DNA from: Macrostomum lignano
Lineage: Eukaryota
Length of the DNA stretch: 64,000 nucleotides
Assembly (NCBI GenBank): GCA_002269645.1
Contig: NIVC01001862.1
Span: 164,288 to 228,287 of the forward strand
Reading direction: 5' to 3'
The position numbers and the translations under genes were made by a program. Shown here piece after piece: positions 1 to 59,700 of the stretch; the first letter of the stretch is position 1; each line of letters begins with the position of its first letter. The notes beneath the pieces are model-generated. The model had not been told where the DNA came from, did no database searches, and saw only the letters and a program-made list of their open reading frames with translations.

Positions 1-330
1 GCGCTGCAGGCACTCATTTCAGCGCTGCAGGCACTCATTTCAGCGCTGCAGGCACTCATTTCAGCGCTGCAGGCACTCATTTCAGCGCTGCAGGCACTCA
101 TTTCAGCGCTGCAGGCACTCATTTCAGCGCTGCAGGCACTCATTTCAGCGCTACAGGCACTCATTTTGGCGACATGAAGAAAAATTATTGATTTCCAAAA
201 CGGGTCACAAGGTGGGAGTGGGGGGTCAAAGCATCTGCATGTATTACCCCACAGAGCTTTCACTGGGGGGGGGGACATTGCTCCTCTTTTGGGGGAAATG
301 GGGGAAGTTTACATCCCTGGTCTTCAAATA
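1..330. repeat. 21-bp minisatellite (gcgctgcaggcactcatttca, ~8 copies, 1-170) plus flank of a MITE-like element, truncated by the window start
   Basis: Direct tandem repeat. The unit and the 170-330 flank match the reverse complement of 55818-56540. Confidence 0.85.
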
Positions 331-18592: not shown

Positions 18593-19984
18593 TTAAAGCT
18601 CGTTTAACGCCTGCATCAGAGCCATCTTCACAATGTTTGCAGCCGTTTTCTTCTGCGTCTTCGCTATCAATCGGGCCACCATTTTTAGCAGCACGTTCGA
18701 CAGCAACTGGCTTAACTCGAGAGAGATTCTGTCCTTCACTTTCCTGCCAGCCACAGCTTTGCAGCTTGTCGGCATAGCTTGCAGCCTTGATTTCAACTGT
18801 TTTACACCCAAGCTTTCCTGCCTGTGTAGCTTGTTTGATGGCACTTCTTCATTATCCACCTCTGCTTCTTCATTATCTATCTCTGCTTCTTCATTATCCA
18901 CCTCTGCTTCTTCATTATCCACCTCTGCTTCTTCATTATCCACCGCTGCTTCTTCATTATCCACCTCTGCTTCTTCATTATCTATCTCTGCTTCTTCATT
19001 ATCCACCTCTGCTTCTTCATTATCTATCTCTGCTTCTCCATTACCCACCTCTGCTTCTTCATTATCCACCTCTGCTTCTTCATTATCTATCTCTGCTTCT
19101 CCATTACCCACCTCTGCTTCTTCATTATCCACCGCTGCTTCTTCATTATCCACCTCTGCTTCTTCATTATCCACCTCTGCTTCTTCATTATCTATCTCTG
19201 CTTCTTCATTATCTATCTCTGCTTCTTCTTCGTCCACCTCTGCTTCTTCATTGTCTGCTACGTTTTCCTCGCCGCTATCTTTTTCGTCCGCTATTTCATC
19301 ATCATTGTCAGTTACAAAGCTTTCATTTTCTGTGTCATAATCTCCGTTTTCTGGGCCATCAGGATCCTCAATTTCCGTAACTTCTTCTTCATTCTCCGTT
19401 CCATCCTCGTAATCTGTCCTTTCTTCGTCGTATTCTGTTCCATCCTCTTCATTCTCCGTCCCATCCTCTTCATTCTCTGTTTCTTCCTCTTCATCTTCTG
19501 TTTCTTCCTCTTCATAATCTGTTTCGTTCTCTTCATAATCTGTTCCCTCATCTGCATTCTCGGTTTCTTCCTCCAGTTCTTCAGGACCCTGCTCAGTGCC
19601 AGTTTTAGCGTCGTCAGTGTTAAAATGCATCCTCACAGCACCATTGTTGTCCAAACTAAACTGATCGTCATCATTTTCTGTTGTTTTGTCACTATTGTTA
19701 GGAGAAAATGGTTCTTCCTCGTCAGCAGCATAATCTGATGCATCGCTCACGATATTGTTGTCAGAATGAGCCGCGTCTCTGATCAGAACTTCGCCAAGTT
19801 TGTCGACCTCCTCCGTGCGCACGCCTTCATTGTTGCTCTCGAAAGTCACGCTCTCGACCTGCTCATTGCTCATGGCTTCCGCTCTAGCGCACACACCCAG
19901 CTCATCATTGTTGCCGAATCTTGCACTTTGCGTCAGGCTGCACACTTCTCGATGATCAGGATCCTTCAATATCTGCTCAGCCAT
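18593..19984 (-). CDS. Acidic low-complexity protein, 463 aa, with ~19 EEAEVDN heptads and a basic helical C-terminus
   Basis: ATG-initiated ORF with non-repetitive N- and C-terminal regions. The 21-bp repeat stays in frame and an upstream acceptor lies near 20113. No family recognised. Confidence 0.6.
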   Translation of the reverse strand: MAEQILKDPDHREVCSLTQSARFGNNDELGVCARAEAMSNEQVESVTFESNNEGVRTEEVDKLGEVLIRDAAHSDNNIVSDASDYAADEEEPFSPNNSDKTTENDDDQFSLDNNGAVRMHFNTDDAKTGTEQGPEELEEETENADEGTDYEENETDYEEEETEDEEEETENEEDGTENEEDGTEYDEERTDYEDGTENEEEVTEIEDPDGPENGDYDTENESFVTDNDDEIADEKDSGEENVADNEEAEVDEEEAEIDNEEAEIDNEEAEVDNEEAEVDNEEAAVDNEEAEVGNGEAEIDNEEAEVDNEEAEVGNGEAEIDNEEAEVDNEEAEIDNEEAEVDNEEAAVDNEEAEVDNEEAEVDNEEAEIDNEEAEVDNEEVPSNKLHRQESLGVKQLKSRLQAMPTSCKAVAGRKVKDRISLELSQLLSNVLLKMVARLIAKTQKKTAANIVKMALMQALNEL

Positions 19985-20733: not shown

Positions 20734-23700
20734 ATGCTGCCAATCATTTCTCGACTGCTGCTTGTCAGCATTCTGACGATCTTGGTAAGTTCAATACTTT
20801 GTGAACTTAATCGACGATGCTACTGTAAAAAGCGTGTCATGTTGTGTCATCCTGCAGCTAAGCATCGCACCAGCGCATTGCGATGCGACCACCAGCGAAG
20901 CGGTGAAATCGATCAACACATTCGAATACAACTGGGCAGAGGTTGAGAAAAAGAATTCCAAAGGAGTGGAATTCTCGGTGAGTGTATGTCTCTTGATAGC
21001 GAAACTTCATTCAAAGAGCAAATCTTTTCAAAACCTGTGGAGAAACAGAAACTATATCTTCGAATAAAATTTCCAGCAATATCTTTTTAAATAGATAGTG
21101 CATCTCCACACATACACGAGTCCAGTTTCTACTCAAGTTACGCTTGTTGAAAATCTGAATATTCAACAAGGACTACTCGATGCTAGAGACAGGAAACTAC
21201 AAAAATCCGATCCATTCATAACTTTGTGTTTGAAAATAATTGATAGTTTTTAACCAGAGAATATCGAGTATACATACTTTATACTTTATTTAAATACTTG
21301 GTAAATGAACTTTTTGGCCATAGACATTGAGTTTTAGCAGTTTAAGCTATCATGCACAGTTTTTCACCATGCTTTCATTAAACTCGAAATGTCTATGGCC
21401 AAAAAGTATAGAGTCCCGGAAGGAACGAAAATCAGCTTCACTTTAGACCCTTCTATTGGTATTCTATGTATACTGGATATTCTCTGGTTTAAAATTCTAA
21501 CCAGTGAGTTTGTGTCTGTGGTACAAACCTATCAAAGCAATGCTTTTCGTGGACTAAGTTATTAATAAATCGGCATTTAACTCTTGTACGAGCTAGCTTC
21601 CCGCAGTTACTAAATCACTAAGTGATAAGTACAAAGAAAGTTGTAGTAGCTAAATTGGATGGTTCACTCAACCATATTCTTCAAAACTACTCTCTGTTCC
21701 AGTAGTATGAGAGGAAAAAGCAATATGTACTTATTCGACTACCTCATGCAACTACCTTGAAAGCGGCAAAGTTGCTTGCGTGTGACACGAGCAGCTAGTC
21801 ATGCTTTTCTCCAAAAATTAATCTCTAAACAAAAAAATAAGGCAAATATACTCTTAGGCCATTGCAAGGAGAGCAGCAAGTCAAAATGACACATTAAGAT
21901 AGTGCTGAGTGAACCATCTGGTATATTTAGTATCTGTGCTTTCCCGTCCAAAGCAAAGATAAAGTAAGAAACACTACAGTGCTGCTCTTTTGCCAGACTA
22001 AATCAACTAAATCAATTGAGACTTGACAGAAGCGCAGTTAAATTAATCTCGATCGTATCGATTTTATATGATGTCATAAAATCAGCTCATCGAATTTTTT
22101 TTAATTATAGCTTCCCTCGACAAAGGATTCGAAATTCGATTGGACTCCAGGATCATTCGGACCTGTAAGTACAAGTGCCTATCGAATAATAATAATAATA
22201 TAATTGATTACACCTGCCCCAATGGGGCCAGATGTGCAACCGACAGCTCAGCCTCAGCTATTGCGCGGCGCATTTGAAGGCTGCGTACGGCTGTCCAGTC
22301 CAAGGACTGGGGGGTCGCCACTCCCATCCCCCATCCCCATTTACCCCAGCTAATGCTGGCACCCATTTTACAGCTGGGTGAACTGAAGCAATGCAGAATT
22401 AAGTGTCTTCTTTAAGGACACAGATTGTTTCAGTGGGATCGGGAATCGAACCCCTGACCTTCAAGTCGTGAGTCCGACGCTCTAACCGCTAGGCTATAAC
22501 CCCTCCCTAGGATACAACCCCTCCCTAGGCTGCTACAACCCCTCCCTAGGCTACAACCCCTCCCTAGGCTACAACCCCTCCCTAGGCTACAACCCCTCCC
22601 TAGGCTACAACCCCTCCCTAGGCTACAACCCCTCCCTAGGCTACAACCCCTCCCTAGGCTACAACCCCTCCCTAGGCTACAACCCCTCCCTAGGCTACAA
22701 CCCCTCCCTAGGCTACAACCCCTCCCTAGGCTACAACCCCTCCCTAGGCTACAACCCCTCCCTAGGCTACAACCCCTCCCTAGGCTACAACCCCTCCCTA
22801 GGCTACAACCCCTCCCTAGGCTACAACCCCTCCCTAGGCTACAACCCCTCCCTAGGCTACAACCCCTCCCTAGGCTACAACCTCTCCCTAGGCTACAACC
22901 CCTCCCTAGGCTACAACCCCTCCCTAGGCTACAACCCCTCCCTAGGCTACAACCCCTCCCTAGGCTACAACCCCTCCCTAGGCTACAACCCCTCCCTAGG
23001 CTACAACCCCTCCCTAGGCTACAACCCCTCCCTAGGCTACAACCCCTCCCTAGGCTACAACCCCTCCCTAGGCTACAACCCCTCCCTAGGCTACAACCCC
23101 TCCCTAGGCTACAACCCCTCCCTAGGCTACAACCCCTCCCTAGGCTACAACCCCTCCCTAGGCTACAACCCCTCCCTAGGCTACAACCCCTCCCTAGGCT
23201 ACAACCCCTCCCTAGGCTACAACCCCTCCCTAGGCTACAACCCCTCCCTAGGCTACAACCCCTCCCTAGGCTACAACCCCTCCCTAGGCTACAACCCCTC
23301 CCTAGGCTACAACCTCTCCCTAGGCTACAACCCCTCCCTAGGCTACAACCCCTCCCTAGGCTACAACCCCTCCCTAGGCTACAACCCCTCCCTAGGCTAC
23401 AACCCCTCCCTAGGCTACAACCCCTCCCTAGGCTACAACCCCTCCCTAGGCTACAACCCCTCCCTAGGCTACAACCCCTCCCTAGGCTACAACCCCTCCC
23501 TAGGCTACAACCCCTCCCTAGGCTACAACCCCTCCCTAGGCTACAACCCCTCCCTAGGCTACAACCCCTCCCTAGGCTACAACCCCTCCCTAGGCTACAA
23601 CCCCTCCCTAGGCTACAACCCCTCCCTAGGCTACAACCCCTCCCTAGGCTACAGCCCGGCCTATCGAACTAGACTTTGTTACTATAGCAGGTTCAACTTA

Positions 23701-26700
23701 TCGCACCCTGCAATTCACAGTGCTTCGGATGCGGGACTCGCAGCTATCGATACGTCAGTCACGACTGCGTCCACAGACTGCCAATCAATTTAACAGCTGA
23801 TGCGGTTTCAAAGTAAGTTGAATGCTTGATCTGGCTGCGTACACAGGAGCTATTGTGCCTCGCTACGACTATAACTAACACTGATTACCGACTTTTATTC
23901 CTTCTCAATCAGAACTCTAGTCGGCGTTTTCAAAGTCCCGAAGAGGAGTGCACGCGCCGCAAGGGCGGCCCGCCAGCGCAGAGGACCTTGTTGGGCTGCG
24001 GCCCGCCCTGCAGTCAGCTGAGGCTGCTTCGAGGTGGACTGACCGGGGTAAGTACCTTCTCGGATTAGGAGTCATTAATCCGTTGCTTTTGAAATGATTT
24101 GTCGGTAGGTAGGTGTCTTGTGAAAAGTGAACCTTATCTTCCTCTTCAGCCTTAATTGCTAACTCAGTGGCATCAAAGAATGCTTTTTGTGTGCCAACCA
24201 AAATCAATTGAATTCCATGGGGTATAAATAGTTTTAGACCGCAGAATCCATGAATAAAATTTACATGATCCTACTGCACAGTGTCGCTGTCTTCATGAGC
24301 GCAAACTAGCGTTCGACGTGCCGCGATTGACCTGCCAGGACACTCGCAACCGGTCGGTCAGCTTATCGTTGTGCCAAACAATCTACGAAAAAAGTACTCG
24401 ATTGTACACCGCCGCCCCCTGTGAATTCGACGCTGTCTGCTCTCAGCCAAGCGAGTGGGTAGTTGGCAATTGGACATTGTGCAGCGTGGACAGCCCCCAG
24501 TACCAAAATCGGGAGGTGGTCTGCGCCACTCGAGTACCAAACGGTGTTTACTTGATCATGCACGACTCAATGTGCGTCAAAGCTGCCAGACCCGTGGCCA
24601 ACAGATACTGCGCTCGCTGGGCTGCCGAGAAAAACTTCAAGGTGAGAACATTGAGATTTGTTACCGTGTCCTGAGATTACTGCGGGAGAGGCTTGTACTA
24701 GATTGAGGATATTGCGAGTACAAGAGCGAGGGGTGTACAGAACCGAGAATAGTACAAGAGTGAGGAGAATACATGATTGAGAATAGTACAAGAGTGTGGA
24801 GAATACATGATTGAGAATAGTACAAGAGTGAGGAGAATACATGATTGAGAATAGTACAAGAGTGAGGAGAATACATGATTGAGAATAGTACAAGAGTGAG
24901 AAGAATACATGATGGAGAATAGTACAAGAGTGAGAAGAATACATGATTGAGAATAGTACAAGAGTGAGAAGAATACATGATGGAGAATAGTACAAGAGTG
25001 AGGAGAATACATGATGGAGAATAGTACAAGAGTGAGGAGAATACATGATGGAGAATAGTACAAGAGTGAGGAGAATACATGATGGAGAATACGAGTAGTA
25101 CAAGAGTGAGTAGAATACATGATGGAGAATAGTACAAGAGTGAGGAGAATACAAGATGGAGAATACGAGTAGTACAAGATTGAGTAGAATACATGATGGA
25201 GAATAGTACAAGAGTGAGGAGAATACATGATGGAGAAAAGTACAAGAGTGAGGAGAATACATGATTGAGAATAGTACAAGAGTGAGGAGAATACATGATG
25301 GAGAATACGAGTAGTATAAGAGTGAGGAGAATACATGGTGGAGAATAGTACAAAAGTGAGGAGAATACATGATTGAGAATAGTACAAGAGTGAGGAGAAT
25401 ACATGATGGAGAATAGTACAAGAGTGAGGAGAATACATGATGGAGAATAGTACAAAAGTGAGGAGAATACATGATTGAGAATAGTACAAGAATGAGGAGA
25501 ATACATGATTGAGAATACGAGTAGTACAAGAGTGAGAAGAATACATGATGGAGAATAGTACAAGAGTGAGAAGAATACATGATGGAGAATAGTACAACAG
25601 TGAGGAGAATACATGATGGAGAATAGTACAAGAGTGAGGAGAATACATGATAGCGAATAGTACAATAGTGAGGAGAATACATGTACATGATTGAGAATAG
25701 TACAAGAGTGAGGAGAATACATGATGGAGAATAGTACAAGAGTGAGGAGAATACATGATGGAGAATAGTACAAAAGTGAGGAGAATACATGATTGAGAAT
25801 AGTACAAGAATGAGGAGAATACATGATTGAGAATACGAGTAGTACAAGAGTGAGAAGAATACATGATGGAGAATAGTACAAAAGTGAGGAGAATACATGA
25901 TGGAGAATAGTACAATAGTGAGGAGAATACATGATGGAGAATAGTACAATAGTGAGGAGAATACATGATGGAGAATAGTACAATAGTGAGGGGAATACAT
26001 GATGGAGAATAGTACAAGAGTGAGGAGAATACATGATGGAGAATAGTACAAGAGTGAGGAGAATACATGATGGAGAATAGTACAAGAATGAGGAGAATAC
26101 ATGATGGAGAATAGTACAAAAGTGAGGAGAATACATGATTGAGAATAGTACAAGAGTGAGGGGAATACATGATGGAGAATAGTACAAGAATGAGGAGAAT
26201 ACATGATGGAGAATAGTACAAAAGTGAGGAGAATACATGATGGAGAATAGTACAAGAGTGAGGAGAATACATGATGGAGAATAGTACAAGAGTGAGGAGA
26301 ATACATGATAGCGAATAGTACAATAGTGAGGAGAATACATGTACATGATTGAGAATAGTACAAGAGTGAGGAGAATACATGATTGAGAATACGAGTAGTA
26401 CAAGAGTGAGAAGAATACATGATGGAGAATAGTACAAGAGTGAGGAGAATACATGATGGAGAATAGTACAGGAGTGAGGAGAATACATGATGGAGAATAG
26501 TACAGGAGTATTACTAGTAGCAGGAAATGGCAATCAGTTTTATTTATTAAAGAAATTCTAACCAAGACGCCCTAACCACACCCTATTCAGTGCAAGTGCT
26601 CAGACTACATAGCCAGACGGATCGTGATTTGCATGCGCGGCCGCAGGGGAAGCAGGAAGCCGGTACCGGAGTTCAACTGTAACTGGCACGACAAGCCCCT

Positions 26701-29650: not shown

Positions 29651-31831
29651 CTAGGGATAGTGGCACGGCACCGGAGCTGCCGTCCAGTGATGCCTGGAGC
29701 CTTGCGGACACTGGAACACCCTGGCAAATTCCGTCTGGCGCTGGAGCGCCGCGTTGAGCAGCAGACGGCTGTCCGCTGATTGACTTGCGTCAGTCGAGCA
29801 CTGCGTCTGGGCCCAGTTCAGGAAGAACAGACGCAGTCGTTTGTCAACCTCGGGACCGCCACTTAAAAAACTGTCGACTCCAAGACTTCGTCGGAATAGT
29901 ACCAGAGACACGGACAGCGACACGTGCTTAGCAACGAGCGTTTCAATTAGTTTCGTGTTTGGCTTGTCACCAGGCAGCTGTTTTGCAAAGCACTCGAATG
30001 ACTTTGTGAGCAGGTGCTCACTTGCTGACGAAAATAAGTCCTTACGGTGCTTCGGGGAGATGCTCCAGTACAGAACTTCCGCTACGGAGGCGCCCAAGTA
30101 GGAGTACATCAGCTCCTCTGGGTAGGCAAGGTGAAACAGCGGTGGATTGATTGAACTGAACGGCAGCCAGAGGTCGCTGCTGTTCGTGAGGCAAACACAG
30201 GCTGAGAAAGACTCGCGGAGCGCCTTGCACGGCTCTGGTTGGCATGGCTTGTCGGCTTGGTCAGACATCTGCAGGTAAAGCTGTTCTAGGCGCCTGTTTA
30301 AATGCCTGCTGCTTTGAAATTCGTGTCGCAGCACGCTCAGATCGGCATTGCCTGATGAGTCAATCATGGGGTGAATACGGTCAAGGCGGTTAGCCATCGA
30401 CTGACGCGTGTGAGGGCTGATTTTCTGCGCGTCTTGCACTCGTCTCGTCAGCTCGTTGCGTGCCCTGTGAAGCCGTAGGGTTGGTGAGTGAAATTGTAAA
30501 GTCAGCTTGTAATTGCAGTCAGCTTGGAAAAAAATTACGAACTAAAAAGAAGCCTTTTTCATAGAAAGACATCGTTGTTCCATTCGGACTCAAATTCATC
30601 TACGTATGTGACTGAATGTGCACATGCGTACATCTGTGCTATGCCCTTGAACTATTCTAAGCTCGTATAAAATGTGTACTTTGTACTATTCCGCGCCCAG
30701 TTCCTCATGCCAAACTTACGAGTTGAACAATTTCACTAGGACAGCATGAACACCAGTGGCATTGAAACTGCGATACCGAAGCAACGACTTCACCGACTCT
30801 GGCGCGGCCACTTGCAACGACGCGACGCACAGGTCGTCACTGTTCTCGACGCCTACCTCCAGTCGAATTTGGCAGCGGCGAAATGCGCCAGTCAGCTGTT
30901 GGCCCTCCGTTGACAGAAGCTGTTCAGCTTGAACGGCTCCTAGACCGTCAAAATCACCGTTTAATCGACGACGCACAGTCTGGGCTATCAAGGCTGACGT
31001 TAGCTCGATGATGTTCGTGGGACGATTGTATTGTTGCTGCCGGCTTGTCAGTGCCATCGGCCAGTGGAGCGTCTCACTTGCATAGCGATCAAAGTGTCCG
31101 CATGCGTAGCTGTAGAAATCTTCGCACGGGTGCGTGTGATTGTTCACTAGTCCGATAAGCCGACGATCCAACTGACGTAGAATTTCTGAGAGTTCCGTTT
31201 CGACTGGATCCAGCGTTGGCGAAGGCGCCGTTGTTGAAACGGCTGTCGCAGGCATTGTTGGTGGCACCCGCGAAGACGATCCTGCCGCTTCAACGAGAGC
31301 TGGAGTAGCCGCTGCGTCAGATTCGATTGGCCCAGCGGCTAAGAACGCAGAGTGCGCTTGGCTGCGAAGGTGAAGTCCCAGAAAGACTCCGCCAACGGTC
31401 AGCAAGGCAAGGGACACGGCGCAGAGGCAGAGGCTCATCAATAGCAGTGGACAGCAACAGCCTTTGCGACGACCGCCAGTGCCGTTGCTGCTTCTCTCCG
31501 GCCGCCGTCGGCGATTTTGTCGAACGCATGCGTCGTCCTGACGTCGTCTCTCCAGTCTAATGGTCGAAGCCGTGGCCGTGGCTAGTTCGTTCGGCATTGA
31601 AGCTCCCAGACCAGTCAGGGGATTCGCTTGTCCCTGACTCATAGGTTCCCATTCCCAGCACTGCTGGCCCGGCGGCAACCGGCGTGGGAAACTCTGCCCT
31701 CGGTACTCGCGCTGAAGGCTGTGCATCCTCATCTGCGGATGAAACGGCCAGCCACCAAAATTATCGTCATCTTCGTCAATGTGATTCTGCAAGACTGGCG
31801 CCCCCTGCTGCTGCTGCATTAGCTCAAACAT
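29651..31831 (-). CDS. Neprilysin/ECE (peptidase M13)-like type II membrane protein, shortened and lacking HExxH, ~641 aa; complement(join(29651..30464,30720..31831))
   Basis: Single N-terminal TM segment, HPCEDFYSYACG, INPPLFHLAYP..MYSYLG, LFFLNWAQTQC and EFARVFQCPQGS match M13 landmarks. Phase-2 GT-AG intron 30465-30719. The start codon could lie further upstream. Confidence 0.85.
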
Positions 31832-40305: not shown

Positions 40306-42536
40306 CTCTACTAGGGCATATTGTTTTAGTGTGCTAGCAAGCACGGACAGACAGACTGATTCATTAATCGCTAGTTTTCTTGAGAACCAGTGCACCCTAA
40401 GTTGTCGAGAAAAAAAAACAAGCTGAAAAAGCCGGTGAGCTCTCAGGCTGCATACGGAGCTGAACTGTGCATTCTGGTCTCCGCAGAGCTCCATTATTTC
40501 TTGACGTCCTCTCGATCCTGTCCCCCTCGATCTCCTCACTCTCGGACAAATCGATGAAATTAATATCGCGACAGGAGAAAAATAATAAGCCCCTCCCAGA
40601 TGGCCATACGGGTTGGTTCGCTGTGGGATTTTTTCAGCCCTAAGGTCGGTACACCATCTTGGGGGGGGGAGTCGGTCATGATTTTCAGAGCAAGCCACCC
40701 TGCAACCATAAAAAACTGCTATTCTCCAGGATCTGCAACAGCTCAAAAGTTCGGATTGGACATTCGACATCATTGCTCTTTGTTCCATAAAATTTTATTG
40801 CTCCATCTTGAATTTTGTGCCTTGGTGACATGTTATATGCTGTGAATACAGGAACAGTAAATAGCGTGCTAAACAGACATGACGGTGCAGATGGGGTCAA
40901 AGCCGATAAAAAGTCAATTCTTCAAGTCAATAAACAGAATCAAAATCTGCCAGAATTATTTTTAGTTCTCATAGTTTTTCGATAAGCCTGAAATTTACTG
41001 ACAGGCTAGTTTGGCCCTTTTAATTTCAGATATATAAGCTCATGTATGCCATAGCATCTCATAAGTCAGTGAAATTGAAAGTTCATGTTCCTAGGGCTAG
41101 CTTGAGCTAAAACCAAATTTCACTAAAGGAAGCTTCGACCCGGCCTTTCTAGCATAAAGATCGAGCAATGATATTGGACTGGTCCTCAGAAATTTCCCCT
41201 TTTTGAGCATCATTTCCTCCAGAGGATTAAAAAACGACTTGTTCAGAGCCGATGCAGGGAGAGGCGGAACGGGAATCGTTAGAAAGGAATTACAGGGGGG
41301 GAGGTAAGTCCAATACAGAGATGCGGTGAAATGTACTCTTATCTATCATCGGGGTCTGCTAGGCAGCTGAGATCAGCCAGATCTCGTTGCAAACAGCTTA
41401 CAGCAACTTTTTTTGGGGGGGAGGGCTGCTGGACGTCTTTAATAAGGGGGAGCTAGTGGCGAGAAGGGGGCGGGCTAGAGAACCCATTCGCAGCGTATTG
41501 ATCGCTCCGCATGGTTAGCAGAGAGGTGCGAGCCCATTTTGGTTGCTAGTGTTATTTCTTGCCTCACTCCTAGCCAGGGTCTGTTAGGCAAGTGACAGCG
41601 GCGACACGCATGGATTGGCGAGGGAGAGAGCACGGCCTGTGTCAGAGGCAATTACAGGCGAGCGTTAGAGCCAGTGGCGACTCCAAACATTCAAGCTAGT
41701 CGTATCCTGACTTAAAACGAACCGTTTCGGTTTTTAGGGCCTTGCAGACACAAGCAAAAACGCAGCAACTTACCCAGAGAGATACTGTACGGAACAGAGA
41801 CTACAGCGACCGGGCATCCAGGATTTAGCCTATTTTTAACAAAATCAGCTTAGAGGTAAATGAAACGGGAGAGGAAATATGGGGAGCGCAATAAACTGAT
41901 GGTAATAATAAATATCTCTCCCCTAGTCCCAATACAGGGCCCTCCTGCTCACCTGCTTCTGTTGAATGCCTTTGTAAGCAAACGATGACAATTCCACTAA
42001 ATTTTGGGATAACTCTTTGAAGCTGCTCGGCGACCCCTATGCCAAACTACAGCGTTGACGTGTTTATGCCCAATCCGTTATCCACGCACATCTGTCCGAA
42101 AGACATCAGGAATTGACAAGAAAACAGAGGGATTGAATGATGTAGCGAATGATTTCGAAACTAGAATCTGGACATAGAATCGTAGGCTCTATCAACAGAT
42201 TGGCAGGCAAAGAGAAGGATGATAGTGAATTTTTGCTATAGAGTTTTTTTCTCTTTTGGATCGGCGCTTTGCGTGTCGGAACTTCTGTAGACTCAATTGG
42301 GCCTCGTGGCAGCATACAGCTTTGAAAGCCGAAGCAAATGACTACGGAACTCGGCCAGGAATCCATCTCCACAGCTTCTGGGGGAAACTTGCAACAAACT
42401 GACTGAGTTACAAACGAAGGAAGCAAATGTAGAGAGATGTAACGAGTGAGAGACAGTCAGGAGGCAATAAGGCGGGAAGAATGTAACTATGACAAGAAAG
42501 AAGCACACTAGAAAAAAATAGAGTGACACCACAGAG

Positions 42537-43180
<644 letters not shown>

Positions 43181-45223
43181 AAGATATTGTGGTATTCAGA
43201 TGAGAAGCGTAAAGTTAGTCAGACGGACTCACCCCTCACCGGCTCTTGGACAAGTTCTCAGCAAAAATGCGTTGAAAGTTGTAGATCTAATATCGGCAAC
43301 TGTGGACGGCAAATTGTGAAAATGTAAAGAGCAAGGTTACAACTTGCATTGCAGAGATTCGTTATACAAAACAGCTTAATTAGAGGCTTTAGCAGATTAG
43401 CCAACCACCTGTTCCAGTCTCCGGGAGCGTACAAGAACACAAATAGGCAAAAAGGCAGCACAGCGGCTCATTGCCTGCATCCTATTTTTAAAAATGCTTC
43501 TTCCTCGTCTGTCACAGGCCAGGACTTGTCCTGAACTGACGACACTCCAGAAAACCTGCCAGCGCGCTCTCCTGATTGGCTGCCACCGCGGGAGCTGCTG
43601 GGGTGACCGGGCCTTAGTCGGTCCTCCGGGAAGAGACGCAAAGCTGTGGACGACACCAATTGGCTTTGACCCTGAATTTTTTGGCGTTTGAGTAGAAGAG
43701 GCAAGAGACAGGGGAGGGGGGACATGATGGCGACAGAGAGGGGAAGCGGAGGGATAATTTAATGCGCCTCACTCTGCCGGTGGAAATCCTCCGCTTCACG
43801 GCCAGTTTTGCTTACATTTGTCCCGTGCTGCTCTCGCTTCTACGCATGCGTGGGGAAGATAGATAGAGATGTAAGGGGCAGAGATGAGAGCAAAGACTAA
43901 TTAATCGCTGGGTGGAAGACGCCAAGTGGTGTGAGTGCTTTGAGCCAGCCAGCTCCGTGTCCAAACGCCAGTACTTATACTGAGCTTTGCAACTGCTGAT
44001 TCATCATTTGTGCCATCAGTAAACTGCAGGGACTCTGTCTGGATGGTCCACTCGACTTGTGGAACCGTTCCATAGCTGCACTGTCTCACTGTTTACCGCA
44101 CTGATTAGCTATTTGAGTTTCAGGTTTACTCTTGCCAAAGCTATTATATATAGTAATGTTAGATGGCTTAGTTCCTATTTATTTATGTGCTCCAGTGTCT
44201 ACTTGTTATAGTAGGATAATTTGAGGCTAACAAGAGTTGTTTTTAATGAGTGTAATTTAGTCAAACAGTACAGCGCTAACGTTTCAGCTAGTTTATCCAT
44301 ACGTTTACTCCGGCCCAGTAATCTAATCGACTAATTTAGCCTTGTATATTAATAGATAAAATCGACTTATTCACCGACCCACACACGTGCAACATTCCGA
44401 CGTCCGCCTGACGTGCCTGACGGTCCCGATGTCGATGGACGCTGCTGGCAAATGTGTTTTTACATTATTACACCAATGCTTCCGCTAAACATCGGTGTGG
44501 CGCCGCTGTGTTGCGTCACTTTTGATGAGCTAACGATCTACGAGCGTATGCGTTTCTGTTGACTAACTCTACATGTTTAGTGTACAAATACTGTACTCAT
44601 AGTGTAAGGGCGTGCCCGGCGTGAGCTCTTGTAGATTGTTGCACACGAATGAGATCTCGTTTTAGCACGACACGTTGCCTGTCCCTTCACTTGCGTGTTA
44701 CAATGTAAATATATATGATGCTCGATGGTATAACAACTCGTGAATCTCAGCATAACCAACTTGCCTCTGATTTCTGACCACGGCATGACAATCGGTGTAA
44801 TGTAAAAATACCCGTTTTCCAACAGCGTCGATATATGCCGAAAACCGTCAGCGGATGTCTCTGACATTGAGTCACTTTACAGGGACTGTAAGTCAACTGA
44901 CTCATTGATATTTTTTATCGGCCAATCTTCTTTGTATTCCAATAAATTACTATCGCCCTCAAGAACAGCGTTAGACGATGCAGAGATCGAAGAGCATTGA
45001 CTGAGAAGAAAGGCTGGGGAGGTTGCTGGCTAATGTGCGGTTTGCAACGAGGGATACCGATGGATGAGCAGACCAATCCTACATGTATCTAGCCTGCCCA
45101 CGCACGTGTTGCTCTTGGAGACGGTTGGCTATCCAAAAAATCGATATAAATATACTGACAAAATTTTCACAGCTTCCGCGCTCTCCAAGTCGCAATACAG
45201 TCCTGTCCTATGCTCCTAGCCTC

Positions 45224-48635: not shown

Positions 48636-49149
48636 CTTAACACAGGGCCAGGATATTAATTCGGTCCAGATTGTCATTTAAGTAAATTGTGCATTTGGTT
48701 TTTTCACAAATTTTTAAAATAGACTGAATTTTGCTATCGCTTGTTTACCTTGCTGTTCCAAATTTCCTATCTAGACCCACATTTTAGTAGCGGATCTAAT
48801 TAAGTGTAGAGCGGACTTTACAAGTTCTGCAGATCGGTTTGGCTTGGCTTAACTGGGTCCTGTTTGCACTATTTGTCACCCGAGACAAATTACGGACCCT
48901 CTGTCTGTACAGGCGTGTCTTCTGTCCACATTTTTATTGCCTTGGACTCGGCAGCTGTTTGTTTCGACTCTTTGTTTTTGTCTGCGGGTGAAAAATAGTC
49001 TGGCTAAAGGGGTGTTGAGAGGACTATTGGGCCTGGAAAGAGATAGGGAAATCCAACCCATGGCATGTTGTGACATGCAGAGCGGATTTTCCATCTATCT
49101 ACCTACCTCCATCTATCTACCTACCTACCTATAGGTATATATGGATATA

Positions 49150-51111
<1,962 letters not shown>

Positions 51112-51586: not shown

Positions 51587-51596
51587 TATATAAATA
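51587..51596 (+). promoter_or_regulatory. Putative TATA box for the BH3-motif gene
   Basis: tatataaata ~110 nt upstream of ATG 51705. Confidence 0.45.
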
Positions 51597-51704: not shown

Positions 51705-53115
51705 ATGTCTGAAACAAATGGAAAAAACAACAACAACAGTACTCAGGCTCGCGTATCACCCGACAGGCCGAGTCCTGCTAATCAGTCAGGCAGCCTACTA
51801 CTCAAGCGTCGTCGATTGCGCAGCACCACCTATGCGAATAACAGCAGCATGTCCAGTGTCACCAATGACAATGACGGCACTGCTGGGTCGGTTTGGAGTT
51901 CGGCGTTTAATCTGACCCAGCTGCGCGTGCGAACACCGTCAAGTCAGCCGCAGTCTCGCACTGTCAGTGAAGTTCGATCTGTTGAGAAACGCAGCGCGGA
52001 TATAGCTAAGCTTAGCCTAAGACTGATGCTGTTGCAGCGGCTGAGTAGTATGAACGCTGATGTGCGAGAGAGGGCGTTGTTTATGATGCGGCAAGCCAAC
52101 TGTGACTGCGATGGCTGGTGAGCTAAAATTTAGTTTTGTTTTAGTATACGTGGACTAGCAATAACAACCCCCCTCTGGGGAGGCACCCAATGAACGATTA
52201 ATTAAAAAAACTATTTGTTTTGGCTTCTTGTTAGATGTCGATTGTGTAAAACAAAGATATCATTTGCCATCACTGATGTCACGCTTTCCTGTCTAAGTCA
52301 TCAGCTTTCCTTTTCAGCCTATTTTGGCATCTCCCCTTTGGGAATTGGCGTCTCACCAGCTTTCCTTTGATTTTGAATTGAACCATGGCCTTAGCAGCTG
52401 CCCCATGACCTATAGAGCCATGGAATAAACTGAAGCCAGTAAGGTCGTGAAAGATTTGAATTTACAAATTTACGACTATTTTCTTCTTTAGCCCCCTCAC
52501 CTACGCAGCACACGGCTAAAATTAGCTTCTCTGCTTCTAAGCCACAAAGAGGGGCGTTTAGGCTTCAAAATTAGCATCAAGACAGACTAGACTCAAAACT
52601 GAGTATTTGGGGGTTGGAGTGAGCGTCAACAATGTACATTTGAGTATTTATTGTGGCCCCGGCACTCAATCTAAATTTCTTATAGAGCGGATACAGGTAA
52701 ACAGTGGAACTACTACTAGTTAAATACGGAACTGTAGCCAAATATAAGGCAAGAGTAACATTCCCCATTAAAAATTTCTTTTTCGATTTAGGCACGCTAA
52801 GACTACTTTTACTTGTTCCGGGCGACAAGGGAAAGGTTTAATTACAAAATTTACCGAACAAATCCAAGCCAATATGGCTATAACTAAAACTAGCTATAAG
52901 TAATAGCTATGACTATAACTTGCCTCAGGTGCCCCCAGCCGGAAGTCAGTAGCGGTCGCACTGCCGCTGACAAGACTCGATGGTTGGCGCGGAAACTGGC
53001 CAGATTTGCGGACGAGTTCGGCGCCACCTGGGCTGGCGGCGCGGCCGCTAGGAGGGCTCGGGAGGTGAGGCTGAGCTGGATGTTCAGGGAAGGGCTCGAG
53101 CGGGCCCTACTGTAG
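51705..53115 (+). CDS. Candidate BH3-only (BAD-like) protein, 199 aa; join(51705..52117,52929..53115)
   Basis: Donor tg|gtgagc and acceptor cctcag|g are both phase 2 and rebuild a Trp codon. Exon 2 encodes RWLARKLARFADEF (BH3 consensus). Exon 1 is Ser/Asn-rich with RLRSTT and RVRTPS motifs. Confidence 0.65.
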
Positions 53116-53284
53116 ACATGGCGCTTTGTTACTTTGTCGTTATTCAGTTTGCAAGTAGGGGGCTTTAGGCAACTGCGCAAACCAGCAAAGAGGCAAACAG
53201 TTATTCATGTACATGTCCATTCTGCTGACCCCTGAGCATGCACACGGATACTATGTGGACACGCACGAAATTGCACTTGAATAG

Positions 53285-53616
53285 CAGAGGCCGGCAAAAT
53301 TTTTACGTCCAGAGCCAGATAAATAACCTAGCGCATGATTGCGGTCCAGAGGAGGGAGGGAGGAGAGGTAATAAAGGGAAAAGAGAAAGGAGAAAGGTGA
53401 TGCGAGGGAATAAAGGAGATAAGAATAGAGGAGAATAAAAAGAATAGGAGAGGAGAGAAAAGCGAAGAGAAAGGAGATTATAGAGAAGAGAGCTGAGAAG
53501 AGACAAAAACCTTGAGTGGACCGGATTGCTATTGTGAAATTGCACAGGACCCGAGGGCCGGATAGAGAGGCTTTGCCGGCCGCATGGGGCTCGCGGCTCG
53601 AGTTTGCCGACCCCTT
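53285..53616. mobile_element. hAT-type MITE (same family as 17338), degenerate
   Basis: cagaggccggcaaa ... gtttgccgacccct ends and shared internal ggattgctattgtgaaatt..gacccgagggccggatagagagg. No TSD seen. Confidence 0.75.
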
Positions 53617-54180
53617 TACGTATTAGACCTAGATAGATACCGACAGACCATTTTTAGTATAATGGATTTGAGCCTCCCAGAGTCATCACGACTGTCGCCC
53701 GTGAACTATCGCAGATGAGCCTGCCTCAAGTATCAGGTAAAGCCGAATTACGTCACTGTCTCAACCATCATCTGACCGGCTTTGAGTCAGTCCGATGTCG
53801 CGTAGCGTTTCTGTTGATTCTCTGCTCTGAACTGGCTGCCAAGGCGGTGCTGCAGTGCAATGCTGTGGCTCTGGGGCTCATTGTCGGTTGTTGCTCCGAA
53901 CTGCTCTGCTGCCACATTGCTCCCATTGTGATTGTTCGAGGCTGGGTGAGATGGCTTATAATCTTATGCTTGTTGAACGATTTAAAATATAGTTTTGTAC
54001 TCATAACAATGCCTTGTAGACTGGGGTAGGGTCGAGTAGGGTCGTCTTGATGAATTGGTCTTGATCAATAAGGTGGGGTTGTCTAGATCAGTGGGATTGG
54101 GTTTCCCAGACAACTGGAGTATCTACATGTAAACCAATGGGTTAGGGCTGTTTGGATCAAAGCGGTTGTTTTGCCTAGAT

Positions 54181-54482
54181 CAGGGGTCGGAATAATTTTT
54201 TACCTCCAGGGCAAGATAGAAAATCCAGAGCATGACTGCGGGCCAGAAGAGGAAGAGAGAGAAGAGGGAATAGAGAAGAGAGTAGAGAGAACAGAAGAGA
54301 ATAGAGGACGAGAAGTGAGAGAAGAGGAGATAAGAGAGGAGATAAGACAGAAAAGAGCTGAGAAGAGACACAAGCCTCGAGCCGGCCGGATTGCTATTGT
54401 AAAGCTTCAAAGAACCCGAGGGCCGGATAGAGAGGCTTCGCAGGCCGCATGTGGCTCACGGGCTGGAGTTTGCCGAGCCCTG
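54181..54482. mobile_element. hAT-type MITE (same family)
   Basis: caggggtcgg ... gtttgccgagccctg ends. TSD gcctagat/gtctagat fits the NTCTAGAN preference of Charlie-type hATs, though the flank is itself a degenerate gtctagatc repeat. Confidence 0.8.
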
Positions 54483-55817
54483 GTCTAGATCGATGGGATG
54501 GGTTTGTCCAGATGAATTAAGTGGGGTTGTCTTGATCGATAAGGTGAGGTTTTCTGCATTAAATAATTTGTGTCTGGGCCTGTATTGAGATGGAAAAGTT
54601 GTCTTGACGTAACTTACAATTAAATCAAGTCAACCACACTACCTCTCGTTGTATGTATTGCAGAGCTACTTCATCAACGCAGCTGAGTTCACCCGAGCAA
54701 CCGGAGTTGGTCGCAGACTGCTCACTGCCCTAATTCTGATTGGCTGTATGGGCGCGTTTGCCAGCCGTACTCAAAGTCACTGAGAGCTGCTGTGATTGGC
54801 CCAACCAACTCCAAGTCATGTACATACGAGTGTTTGTGTACATAAAACAGTCGAACTTGCTATGTAAGTCAACACTTCAATGTACCAACTACTAATCGCA
54901 AAAAATCACAAACGCTGTTTTTTAAACCTTTATGGTGCTCTTCTACGCTTTTTTGTATAGCATGTTGCATTCTTGCATCAGTATTGTAAGTTTTCTGTTC
55001 TTTTCCAGTCATTTTTTACTTTGTGCGCGACGAATAAAGTCCCAGCTAGATATGCAATTGCGCTTTTTTAATTCATGCAGGCAAAACTTAATTTGCTTAC
55101 TGTACATAATTGCCATTGAATGCGCAGCAATATTATTTTTAAATCATATTGGTAACTGTAAATATAAATGTTAGACATGATATTATCAATAGAATGAGCA
55201 AAATCCACTACGCTGTTAAGTAGTGTTGGTGCTGGAGCAGTATCGAATATACGAAAAATGTTAACTGTTCTATTTATTTTATCTCTCAAAGTTAATTATT
55301 AAAACTCAAATATTTCTAAATAACCTAATTATTTAAACAAACTGTTTTGTTCAAACAGACGCATTTTAGTGCGGTGCAGATGTTAAACTTTCATTTAGAT
55401 CAACCTGGCAACCCCTGTTGAAAGAGTCAAGTTAGTTTCAGCAATAGATTCGACAGTTCAGCGGCAAATTCTTGCAAGCTTTGTACAGCAGAGCTCAAAC
55501 AACGGCTTTAGCAGCCTCTTGACCGTACAGGCAGAATACGTAGACGGAACCGCTACCGACCGACGCCCTCTAAGTTGATCGGATGGCCTCAGCGAAGTTG
55601 CACAAGACCGATTATTCGTATTGCTGGCCGAATATACATTAACAAACCGCTACATTAGGCCAGTCTCGTGCATTTCCTACATACTGATAACTTAATGTAC
55701 CTGTAGCATGCAATCTTATAAATTTTATAAGCTATAAATTAGGTCTTAAATCGTGAGTACGAAAAACCTACGCTAAAGTTTCAAAGCTCGATCATTCAGC
55801 ACATCCAACGTCATTCC

Positions 55818-56540
55818 CAGGCGCGTCGCCACCGGGGAGGGAGTGACAGGGGGACATGTCTCCCAGTAAAAGCTATGGGGGACATTTCAATGCTTTGTCC
55901 CCCCCCACCCCACCTTGTGACTCGTTGCGGTAATCAATAACTTGTTAATGATTAACAAAATGAGTGCCTGCGGCGCTAAAATGAGTGTCTGTGGCGCTAA
56001 AATGAGTGCCTGAGGTGCTAAAATGAGTGTCTGTGGCGCTAAAATGAGTGCCTGAGGTGCTAAAATGAGTGCCTGAGGTGCTAAAATGAGTGTCTGAGGT
56101 GCTAAAATGAGTGTCTGTGGCGCCAAAATGAGTGCCTGTGGCGCTAAAATGAGTGCCTGAGGTGCTAAAATGAGTGCCTGAGGTGCTAAAATGAGTGCCT
56201 GAGGTGCTAAAATGAGTGTCTGTGGCGCTAAAATGAGTGCCTGAGGTGCTAAAATGAGTGCCTGAGGTGCTAAAATGAGTGTCTGAGGTGCTAAAATGAG
56301 TGTCTGTGGCGCCAAAATGAGTGCCTGTGGCGCTAAAATGAGTGCCTGAGGTGCTAAAATGAGTGTCTGAGGTGCTAAAATGAGTGCCTGAGGTGCTAAA
56401 ATGAGTGTCTGTGGTGCTAAAATGAGTGCCTGTGGCGCTAAAATGAGTGCCTGAGGTGCTAAAATGAGTGTCTGTGGCGCTAAAATGAGTGTCTGTGACG
56501 CTAAAATGAGTGTCTGTGGCGCTAAAATGAGTGCCTAGAA
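55818..56540. mobile_element. MITE-like element carrying a 21-bp minisatellite (aaaatgagtgcctgaggtgct, ~27 copies, 55957-56540)
   Basis: Array plus unique flank homologous, in reverse orientation, to 1-330. Confidence 0.7.
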
Positions 56541-56710: not shown

Positions 56711-59700
56711 CTAGTACAGTACGCAGTCCATCGGTCTCTTGTTGCATAGTCGAGTCCAAGCCAATTCCAGCACCAGAATTAGCAACCCGATGGCGTACAG
56801 ACACCCAGTGACAACAAGGCAACCCGCTATGCCTTCCATATCGATGTTGTCGGCATCCGTTGTGGATGTGCTGGAGCCGCAGTCCTGGTCGCTGGACCAG
56901 TAGATATTAAATAGACGCCTCATCACCCCCGCCTCGTGCAGTTTCTGCATGCTGGAATAGTTCGTTTTAAAATGGGTCTTGAACCAACACCACTTTGATT
57001 TGAGCACTATTTGACCAGTGGAGCTATTAGTGCCAATGTGTGAACTGGCCTTAATTTGCAGGGGGGGGGCATTTGGCTCTGCCGAAAATCAAGGTGGCAG
57101 TGGACCGGAAGCCACACAAATTCGTAACGCAGGCACAAATCGAAGCTGAGTACCATTGTGTGCGAGGGTCAGATAGGCAACTGGTTTGTTGATCGGCCCC
57201 AATTACATTGCTGTGTTAATTTGTACTCAAATAATCTCTTTTCCTATGAATGCAAGAGACAACCTGCCTTAAAGTCAGCATGTAGCCAACACAACTTACT
57301 GAAAATCGAACAGGCCAGCATAGTAGGCATCTTTCGGATACATGAATGCCACAGTCGCCGTGTTAAATAACTCTTTAGCTAAGTAGTACTGACTGCAGTT
57401 TTTCGTCGCAACGGCTAGCAAGGTTGTGTAGTCAGCAATGCAAGCTTCGCTCTTTACTGGCGGCTAAAAATATTTCCGATTGTTCAAATGAAGTTAAATC
57501 AAAAAAACAAAAATTTAATCTAGAATATTGTGAAACAGACCTTCTTTGGACAATCGGCGTTGGATGCTATGACAAGCATTTGGTCCGCAATCTGTGTGTA
57601 CACACCAGACTGCGCCTCAGTGAGCAGGGTGTACAGATTGGTTCCATCGTTCACTACTGGTTTTATCTGGCTCTGTGACGCTAGATCTGCCAGTGTCTTG
57701 ATTGGATAGTCAGTAACAGTAACCGTAAGGTGAGCAGTTAGATCGCCTGTGAAAATTTATTGTACTGCTTTTTGACTATTGATCCTTAAAAATTCAATAC
57801 CGCCCCAGCTTTCATCACTCTAGAAAGAATAGGATCCCGAATTTTAACCGATCGAATCAACAAAATAATTCTCAAAACCGCCAAAAACGCCCGAAGTTTT
57901 TTAAAAGACCTACCGGTGTATGCTCCATAGATGATCACGGTGAACATCCACCAGAAAGACATAACAGTTCTTGGCGACATTGCAAATGGGTAGAAGTCCT
58001 GACCTTGCTGTAGAAAGCTTCCAATGGCGCTCCAGATGTACTCTTGCAACCAGAGCTCGTCAGCAACTGCATACTGCATGCCCAAGTTGTAGGCAGAGAA
58101 TGGACAGAAATAAGCTAATAGCCACATTGCCATGGAGCAGACCGCGAGAAAGCCGACCAGGGCCAGCCAGACATCCCAGCTGAATGGCATGAAAATGTTC
58201 CACGCTTTTGAAAGAGGCTCCGGTTTTACCACCAGCACGGCGTTAGATTCTTGAAATAAAGGGGTTGAAAAATCAACCACTGACTCTCGGATGGCGGTCT
58301 TTGTAAATGGTCCAGCAGAAAGGTTAACCATCTGAAGTTTCAACAAATATTCAATTATATTTCATTTATAATAACTGTTGACCACAAAGTTTCCACAAAG
58401 CTCTCCACAAGCACAAAACAACACAAATGCGAAACGAACTCACTCCTCTCTGAAGCTCTCCTACACAGCCAGTAAAATAGCTCAAGCCCACCTGCGGCGC
58501 GCCCCAATTTCCATCGTCCGAGTCTTTCGTAATAAACCTTCATTTAAACAAAACAATCAAAATTGATCGAACAAATAATTATTTAAATTCTGAAGTTCAG
58601 TGGAAAACTCACTTAAAATCTAGTCTTGAAGACAAGATGTCAAGAATGTCTCGCGTCAGTCCTGATATAATAACAGTGTTATTCAAAAACTTCTCCATAA
58701 AGACTGTCTTTGGAGAAGTCTAAAAGTTATAAAAATTCACTATAGACGTTTGATGATTTATAGAATTGTTGTTTTTTATCAACCCAGTCATTATATATCT
58801 TCGTTCAACGCTACCTGAGGAGTGCAAATAACAATTGTAGCATTCTTGAACCCCATGAAGGTGTTGGGGAATGCCAAACTGACTCCCTTGTAGCGAAACT
58901 GCTTGCTCAGAGCTCCGCTCGATGCATCGAACTGAGCCGACCTCAGCATCGAGACCGGAGACGACCACAGCTCATTGTAGGACGCGACCACTTCGACTCG
59001 TTGCGAGCTGAAGTGTCTGGTCAAGCTGTTGAACGAGATCAGGCCTCGCTGAGTGTCATAGTCGCTGATCTGCACATCGAGTAGGGATTGGGGAGAGACC
59101 AGCTCGAAACTAATAATGCTTGTCAATGCTAGCTAGCTAGTGAGCTCACTCACACTCATGAGTCTGTTGAGCACAGTCGAGCCCGATGTCCAGTGGCGCA
59201 GAGGCGCACACGAGGCGTTGCCGGGAGAGAATCCCGGATCCAGCAGCGAGTCATTGAGCGCCTTGGCCATGGCTTCTACGGCGTCTACGAAGCGAGCGTC
59301 CAGAGTCTGTCGAATGCGAATGCGACGATCGAGTGCGAGATCGAGTGCGACAGAGGCATGCATTGCACACGTGCGGTGCTGCATGATGAATCCCTGCAGC
59401 CATCAAGCAGCACACATGAAACGCTCACCCGAAGCCAGTCCGTCTGGCACTGAGGAAGCACATCCATCACTGCTGCTGTGCACTCGGTGAACACGCTGCC
59501 TCTCAGCAGAGCGACGTTCGCGTTCGTCGGCGTCACGCTGAGCACATCGGCCTTGGACAGTCCGGTGTCGAGCACAAGCCAGAAGTAGTTCTGCTGCATC
59601 ACTGCAGCTTCCCTGGCGAGCCTGAGCACACTGAGAGCATTGCGAGGAGAGGCGAGCAGCAGCAGCTTGAACACTTTCTTCTTGACCAGCCGCTTGAGGT

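Follow-up and report, generated by a model that had tools for sequence, protein, structure and literature searches.

Gene structure at the locus

We analysed a 64-kb stretch of the genome of Macrostomum lignano (contig NIVC01001862.1 of assembly GCA_002269645.1, referred to as the window; all positions are counted within it), concentrating on a gene that encodes a helix resembling the third Bcl-2 homology motif (BH3). Positions 51705-54783 of the + strand form a four-exon gene whose product is the GenBank protein PAA63232.1. As judged from its sequence, this product is probably a very divergent, membrane-anchored, multi-motif Bcl-2 homologue, confined so far as visible to Macrostomum.

The window sequence reads as a 900-nucleotide (nt) open frame of 299 codons spread over four coding exons (Table 1), with an in-frame stop nine codons upstream of the ATG at 51705. 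All splice sites consist of G/GTGAG donors and AG acceptors (the slash marks an exon-intron boundary). Exon 1 begins with a Ser/Asn/Arg-rich and probably disordered N-terminus (about residues 1-85), and its tail encodes two helices, 87-114 and 118-136, predicted by a low-confidence model, the first of which is a candidate alpha1. Following the BH3 helix of exon 2, exon 3 encodes in this order alpha3/alpha4-like helices, the BH1-like remnant F205-ESVRCRVAFLLILCSEL (53778-53831), a very hydrophobic and Cys-rich pair resembling alpha5/alpha6, and the BH2-like IVIVRGW (53925-53945), while exon 4 completes BH2 with SYFINAAEF and closes with the tail anchor, RR-LLTALILIGCMGAFA-SRTQSH.

The original prediction for this locus was an unannotated two-exon gene of 199 amino acids (aa) ending at 53115 and encoding a BAD-like BH3-only regulator of apoptosis. 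Both of its open reading frames (ORFs), 51705-52121 and 52909-53115, are found in the window, the proposed GT-AG phase-2 junction 52117/52929 lies where it was placed and is backed by annotation derived from RNA-seq, and the upstream TATA box corresponds to the TATATAA at 51587. The 199-aa frame also exists, made up of 413 + 187 nt when exon 2 is read on to the stop at 53113-53115, but exons 1 and 2 are only the front half of a four-exon gene that yields 299 aa in the main models, and these do not end at 53115, being spliced out at 53064/GTGAGG. Likewise, the amphipathic, Trp-containing tail described after the BH3 has two origins: GATWAGGAAARRARE is exon 2, whereas the last 16 residues, VRLSWMFREGLERALL, come from reading through intron 2.

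Table 1. Features of the gene and its immediate flanks in window coordinates
Feature	Position	Strand	Remarks
TATA-like TATATAA	51587..51593	+	118 nt 5' of ATG; candidate element
Coding exon 1	51705..52117	+	413 nt; residues 1-137 and 2 nt of codon 138
Intron 1	52118..52928	+	811 nt, phase 2, GTGAGC...CAG; donor CTG/GTGAGC, acceptor CCTCAG/G
Coding exon 2	52929..53064	+	residues 138-183, bears the BH3 helix; donor GAG/GTGAGG at 53064/53065
BH3 motif LARKLARFADEF	52984..53019	+	residues 157-168, L157-A-R-K-L161-A-R-F164-A-D166-E-F168
Intron 2	53065..53714	+	650 nt, phase 0
Start of intron 2, read through	53065..53115	+	first 51 nt give VRLSWMFREGLERALL and a stop (53113-53115); end of the 198/199-aa model
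Coding exon 3	53715..53945	+	residues 184-260; acceptor CGCAG/ATG, donor TGG/GTGAGA
Intron 3	53946..54663	+	718 nt, phase 0, straight after the TGG of Trp260
Coding exon 4	54664..54783	+	residues 261-299, stop TGA 54781-54783; acceptor TTGCAG/AGC
AATAAA	55033..55038	+	candidate poly(A) signal, 250 nt 3' of the stop

Introns 2 and 3 share a 129-nt dispersed repeat (53468-53596 and 54333-54461, 84% identical), flanked by GA-rich stretches with several AATAAA (53370, 53410 and about 53434), possible intronic poly(A) sites.

Annotation, paralogous copies and homologue searches

A search of a set of 5.8 billion proteins returned a single cluster of five members, all from Macrostomum lignano and all labelled hypothetical or uncharacterized. 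The gene thus already stood in GenBank: PAA63232.1 (BOX15_Mlig001000g3, 299 aa), assigned to contig NIVC01001862.1, is identical to the four-exon product of the window, and the two-exon read-through form is PAA69557.1 (198 aa), annotated at a paralogous copy. The three further models of the cluster, which stem from two annotation efforts, are full-length or nearly so (288-298 aa). All five proteins have the intron 1 junction in common, and four of the five use the strong donor 53064/GTGAGG and go on into exons 3 and 4. The BOX15_Mlig models were built from RNA-seq, using StringTie/TACO together with a de novo transcriptome and TransDecoder (PMC5730564), hence the junction from 52117 to 52929 has transcript-derived support.

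The locus is present in three copies in the assembly, L001 on NIVC01001312.1, L002 on NIVC01001050.1 and L003, the window copy, on NIVC01001862.1, in keeping with the high share of duplicated sequence that has been described for this genome (PMC5730564). Where flanks and introns can be aligned, the copies are about 1-3% different, with a few indels besides, and each copy keeps a 297-299-codon frame over four exons with consensus splice sites. The copy for which only the 198-aa form is annotated also has exons 3 and 4 intact, with the same protein sequence. Between the window copy and L002 there are 8 substitutions in 900 nt of exon (0.9%) and 44 in about 2180 nt of intron (2.0%).

Two further results of the searches were set aside. 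A full-HMMER scan of a second set, of 1.84 billion representative proteins, gave, apart from the query itself, only two bacterial repeat proteins in which 11 short stretches matched, and the latter were rejected as repeat artefacts; a search with residues 140-299 gave no match and missed even the gene's own cluster, so that it carries no information. One paralogue, UniRef100_A0A1I8J172, is named 'DUF4476 domain-containing protein' in UniRef, a label that we discarded, since current Pfam gives no such match even at E <= 10. Under the locus names Mlig001000 and Mlig008885 a literature search brought up no publication.

The BH3 motif

The BH3-like segment LARKLARFADEF that had been singled out in exon 2 is present with a complete consensus. 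L157-F168 fits each position of the pattern h1-small-x-x-L-x-x-h3-small-D-acidic-h4, in which L157, L161, F164 and F168 occupy the hydrophobic positions h1-h4 and D166 is the conserved Asp. The motif lies within a helix predicted over residues 150-167 in the low-confidence AlphaFold2 model.

Taken alone, the motif hardly exceeds chance. The loose BH3 pattern occurs 2 times in the six-frame translation of the window, where shuffled windows average 0.53; the second match, LSKELFGYSDRF, lies at 32169 on the minus strand. When an acidic residue is required after the Asp, 1 is observed against about 0.01 expected from shuffled windows, and the pattern arises in 0.2% of shuffles of the protein itself. 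The PROSITE BH3 signature PS01259 does not match the motif.

A probable Bcl-2-like core in exons 3 and 4

Inspection by eye gave a lead, which was then tested with profiles: FESVRCRVAFLL lines up with the BH1 of BAK, FESGINWGRVVALL, and IVIVRGW/SYF at the boundary between exons 3 and 4 resembles the GGW of BH2. Family-wide hidden Markov models (HMMs) were built from database-retrieved BAK orthologues and from human BAX, BOK, BCL-2, BCL-xL, MCL-1 and BCL-w sequences; those of BAK, BAX, BCL-xL and BOK were checked against a database or the PDB. Variants of the profile included sets made up exclusively of database-retrieved or PDB-verified sequences and leave-one-out sets, and HMMER was run with its filters off.

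With the first family-wide HMM residues 85-299 score 8.0 bits, a value reached by 2 of 2000 composition-preserving shuffles, and nine more profile variants give 4.5-11.4 bits, each reached by 0-3 of 2000 shuffles. The alignment is the same in all profiles: a near-ungapped block of 78 residues places RVAFLL on GRVVAL, RGW on GGW and anchor on anchor. When the sequence is cut into nine helix-sized segments and these are permuted, a score as high as the native one is obtained in only 6 of 3000 arrangements, and in each of the six the alpha5, alpha6 and BH2 segments still follow one another directly in this sequence; read backwards, the protein obtains 0.3 bits with the family-wide HMM. These results amount to a weak, order-dependent match to the profile of the Bcl-2 core. 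A local H-x-LTGF match to BAK was also considered and, not being collinear with the remainder, taken as chance.

The position of the last intron is evidence independent of residue similarity. Bcl-2 homologous genes carry a near-universal 'BH2-splitting' intron right after the TGG of the BH2 Trp (PMC7527217, PMC8998228). Exon 3 ends in CGA GGC TGG/GTGAGA at 53945/53946, in phase 0, and Trp260, encoded by this TGG, is the Trp that the profiles align to that of BH2. A mammalian BAK gene, which we checked, has CGC GGC GGC TGG/GTGAGT at the same place, also in phase 0, and its next exon opens the pre-anchor segment. With three introns, the chance that one falls at the BH2 Trp is about 3 in 897 positions, of the order of 0.3%.

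Concerning the overall architecture, the tail anchor is a 15-residue hydrophobic segment (core 54718-54762) with RR and R at its sides and a six-residue tail after it. Helices are predicted at 87-114, 118-136, 150-167, 174-183, 192-202, 209-229, 233-269 and 275-296, and the order and spacing of these eight modelled helices fit those of the Bcl-2 family. Since the main annotated transcripts continue through exons 3 and 4, with their hydrophobic helical core, BH1- and BH2-like remnants, BH2-splitting intron and tail anchor, the BH3 most probably forms helix alpha2 in a multi-motif Bcl-2 homologue. It would be the sole Bcl-2 homology element only in the model that retains intron 2.

Proposed architecture and function

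If the product is such a homologue, a disordered Ser/Asn/Arg-rich extension (about residues 1-85) would be followed by alpha1 and a Pro-rich loop, by the BH3 as alpha2 (L157-F168), and by alpha3 and alpha4. A hydrophobic alpha5/alpha6 hairpin would then open at a degenerate BH1, in which VRCRV stands for NWGRV and the Arg that pairs with the Asp of a partner's BH3 would be kept. A degenerate BH2 (RGW) would lead into the tail anchor with its basic flanks, which would insert the protein into the mitochondrial outer membrane or the endoplasmic reticulum (ER). There, insertion of BH3 into groove between this protein and the other Bcl-2 homologues of the worm would control permeabilisation of the outer membrane and the activation of caspases. 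In flatworms, Bak and Bcl-2 homologues as well as cytochrome c release are reported to take part in the outer-membrane step (PMC8998228, PMC7022251).

As to polarity, we lean slightly towards a pro-apoptotic role, either as a Bak/Bok-like effector or as a BH3 donor, because the BH3 is of the ligand type (Phe164 at h3, where Bcl-2, Bcl-xL and Bcl-w have Ala) and the alpha5/alpha6 pair is unusually hydrophobic. The disordered N-terminus may be regulatory, by analogy with MCL-1.

Evidence against this assignment and alternative explanations

A number of results weigh against a Bcl-2 homologue. At E <= 10, Pfam scans of the 299-aa product, of its domain part and of the paralogues bring up no PF00452 match, and phmmer against the PDB finds no Bcl-2 match (the PDB matches obtained are exclusively carboxylesterases, at E = 2.5). 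An HMM built from tetrapod BAK alone yields -2.2 bits, reached by 673 of 2000 shuffles, and hence no separation, and pairwise phmmer comparisons with single family members are all insignificant, so that no subfamily can be assigned. A local hhalign alignment, which arranges the BH3, BH1, BH2 and transmembrane segments collinearly (P = 0.027) and to that extent speaks for the assignment, has a probability of only 1.8%. Of the motifs themselves, BH1 lacks the N, W and G, reading V-R-C-R-V-A-F where NWGR[IV]VA is expected, although the Arg and the hydrophobic residues after it are kept, and BH2 reads R-G-W-S-Y-F against W-x3-GGW-x2-F, its first Trp missing.

Searches of the two protein sets found no homologue from outside M. 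lignano, which is why no informative alignment could be built. AlphaFold2 models made on this basis are unreliable, with a mean predicted local distance difference test score (pLDDT) of 42.6 (full length) and 40.7 (residues 86-274), and all Foldseek matches have E > 2 and a template modelling score (TM-score) < 0.33. The top Foldseek match is Bcl-xL for both low-confidence models, and 6 of the 20 matches listed for one and 12 of the 34 listed for the other, none of them significant, are chains of the Bcl-2 family, which accounts for about 0.12% of the distinct sequences in the PDB (220 of 177,635); with both models unreliable, this is a weak hint only. The copies, moreover, are only 1-3% diverged, so that selection on exons 3 and 4 is not demonstrable. 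Finally, in Kyte-Doolittle windows of 19 residues the alpha5- and alpha6-equivalents reach 1.85 and 2.13, above the gene's own anchor (1.58) and above every reference Bcl-2 member (at most 1.5), a hydrophobicity that fits membrane-spanning helices too. This excess, together with the 8 Cys among the 77 residues of exon 3 (two CC pairs), is left unexplained by assignment to the Bcl-2 family.

It is the negative profile results, the losses in BH1 and the excess hydrophobicity of alpha5/alpha6 that keep one alternative serious, even if we regard it as unlikely: a small membrane protein that is specific to the lineage and has no relation to the Bcl-2 fold, with two or three spans in exons 3 and 4 and a cytosolic, partly disordered N-terminal half, in which the BH3-like helix would be there by chance or as an independently evolved short linear motif. 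All three hydropathy peaks (2.13, 1.85 and 1.58) are at or above the usual transmembrane thresholds, the first two exceeding alpha5/alpha6 of every reference. The sole Pfam hint, non-significant at E = 1.5-1.9, is DUF2568, a bacterial membrane family, and designed as well as natural transmembrane bundles are among the Foldseek matches; that Pfam and the PDB give no Bcl-2 match, that the structure models are not confident and that the loose BH3 pattern is close to its chance frequency likewise speak for it. Such a protein would, however, need several coincidences: a collinear, order-dependent profile match that no more than 3 of 2000 shuffles and only 6 of 3000 permutations attain, an intron falling precisely behind the RGW Trp codon, and a BH3-BH1-BH2-anchor spacing within a few residues of that of BAK. 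In addition, the pair carries charged or polar residues in mid-helix (E222, K226; E245, H250), which are commoner in buried bundle helices than in spans.

The 199-aa 'BH3-only' form is the same gene with intron 2 retained and is at most a minor isoform. One could imagine a single gene with two opposing products, a spliced, tail-anchored multi-motif protein and a soluble 199-aa BH3-only protein arising, as for N-Bak or MCL-1S in mammals, through retention of intron 2 or through polyadenylation at an AATAAA in this intron, which we hold to be unlikely. If it were true, BH3-only activity in this lineage would come from the regulated RNA processing of a fast-evolving, Pfam-invisible family member and not from a dedicated gene.

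That the 199-aa protein is itself the functional product, a BAD-type BH3-only sensor regulated through Akt and 14-3-3 that neutralises pro-survival Bcl-2 proteins, is improbable, and with it the growth-factor-regulated, BAD-like part of the original prediction is left unsupported, while the connection that it drew with the Bcl-2/BH3 world probably holds. Several observations do speak for the short protein: transcript evidence underlies the annotation of the 198-aa form at a paralogous copy (PAA69557.1), its BH3 consensus is complete, AATAAA hexamers occur 255-320 nt into intron 2, and BH3-only isoforms of multi-motif genes are known, such as N-Bak (PMC3288346) and MCL-1S (PMC11655658). Its low-complexity N-terminus also contains the basophilic sites noticed earlier. 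RLRSTT and RVRTPS are indeed there, with RxRxxS/T sites at residues 35, 37 and 74, but their frequency is not beyond chance, since at least two such sites appear in 9% of shuffles of this R/S-rich protein. The strict 14-3-3 mode-1 motif R[SFYW]x[ST]xP has no match, nor has R..[ST].P in the short form, which together with the chance-level sites leaves Akt/14-3-3 control unsupported. Scanning the 199-aa product and its 198-aa paralogue against Pfam at E <= 10 found no family, BAD (Bcl-2_BAD) and BH3-only included, and the main product continues into a Bcl-2-like core, contrary to membership of the BAD-like BH3-only class. Four of the five models splice intron 2 out, and the locus of the short form itself has exons 3 and 4 intact. 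An mRNA that retains an intron and has junctions downstream would, besides, be a typical target of nonsense-mediated decay. The read-through tail has no independent coding sign; as 53065-53115 is identical in the three copies, their comparison is uninformative, giving no signal of selection either way.

A transcribed but non-functional locus, be it a young orphan ORF or, in a genome that was recently duplicated, a decaying duplicate, its Bcl-2 likeness being fortuitous, agrees with the lack of homologues beyond the species in the 5.8-billion and 1.84-billion sets and with copies too close to show purifying selection, yet is very improbable given that all three copies retain frame and splice sites, that exons have fewer substitutions than introns relative to L002, and that the Bcl-2-like signals are several and of different kinds.

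Surroundings of the gene

Satellite and microsatellite arrays, as located with Tandem Repeats Finder (TRF), take up a sizeable share of the window and yield many spurious long ORFs. On the 5' side of the gene is a tandem repeat of 272 bp (5.1 copies, 99% matches, 49664-51039) with (TATC)n before it (49148-49679) and (CTAT)n after it (51025-51111); the array ends about 600 bp before the ATG, and the long 'LSIY' ORFs over 49148-51111 are repeat artefacts. On the 3' side, about 1.2 kb after the stop, lies a 21-bp satellite of 27.6 copies with the unit AAAATGAGTGCCTGAGGTGCT (55957-56536), and by eye a related 21-bp unit is seen in opposite orientation at the start of the window (1-166). Further arrays occupy 22489-23657 (18 bp x65), 24717-26509 (34 bp x51), 42531-43184 ((ACAG)n x163) and 11056-11560 (15 bp x34).

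As regards other genes, one for a FRAS1/FREM-like protein of the extracellular matrix has exons at 1342-8679 (+), which show up as long ORFs with a Frem_N domain and numerous Cadherin_3 (CSPG-type) repeats. On the minus strand there are a Peptidase_M13 (neprilysin-like) exon at 29651-31831, whose upstream exon encodes a predicted membrane segment, and an exon of a ligand-gated ion channel resembling ionotropic glutamate receptors at 57786-58346. A 463-aa ORF at 18593-19984 (-) is extremely acidic, with tandem seven-residue repeats of EEAEVDN type that are built on a 21-bp DNA repeat (18844-19252), and has no Pfam match.

Comparison with known systems

The Bcl-2 repertoire of platyhelminths has been reported to be very small, with BAK as the sole pro-apoptotic member and a few Bcl-2-like genes (PMC11463336). 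Surveys of flatworm apoptosis genes rest on BLAST and Pfam, and if the gene described here is a true Bcl-2 homologue, such surveys miss fast-evolving members and the repertoire of a widely used model of regeneration and stem cells is larger than thought. It would also be a natural example of drift in BH1 and BH2 while gene structure and architecture persist, and a concrete cell-death gene for knock-down work in M. lignano.

Among the closest known systems are BAK, BAX and BOK (human BAK, Q16611), in which BH3, BH1 region, BH2 region and tail anchor are ordered and spaced as in the candidate, and with which it shares a ligand-type BH3 with a bulky h3 and the conserved Asp, a hydrophobic alpha5/alpha6 hairpin and basic flanks on the C-terminal anchor. 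Bak-like proteins have been reported in planarians and schistosomes. At the level of the gene, the candidate resembles BAK in the phase-0 intron right after the BH2 Trp codon and in a phase-2 intron shortly 5' of the BH3 (in a region that is not alignable), whereas its intron after the BH3 sits elsewhere. It departs from the three proteins in having VRCR for NWGR, in the loss of the first BH2 Trp, in having no PF00452 match and in going unseen by the BAK-only profile, as well as in the 85-residue disordered N-terminal extension, an extra helix before the BH3, and an alpha5/alpha6 pair of greater hydrophobicity that is also Cys-rich, with 8 Cys in exon 3.

With MCL-1 the candidate has in common a long disordered region ahead of the Bcl-2 core, the tail anchor, a BH2 with RGW instead of GGW and a hydrophobic h3 in the BH3. 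A shorter BH3-only isoform by alternative processing is possible in both cases (MCL-1S, PMC11655658), although MCL-1S comes from exon skipping and the candidate's short form from intron retention. No sequence similarity to MCL-1 is detected, and MCL1 has been placed in molluscs and their close relatives and not in platyhelminths (PMC11463336).

The likeness to BAD is confined to a BH3 that fits the loose consensus (..L..h-small-D-E-F) and to low-complexity sequence with basophilic RxRxxS/T sites before it. The candidate has neither a Bcl-2_BAD match in Pfam nor the RSxpSxP 14-3-3 motif, and BAD has no Bcl-2 core, BH2 intron or tail anchor, whereas equivalents of all three are found in the main product. 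The best analogue of the 198/199-aa model is instead N-Bak, the neuron-specific Bak isoform, in which a stop likewise comes soon after the BH3 and upstream of the last exon junction; N-Bak protein is hard to detect (PMC3288346), and the short form of the candidate is known from one annotated model. Set beside these systems, the gene is probably a new, divergent member of a known family and does not open a new kind of system.

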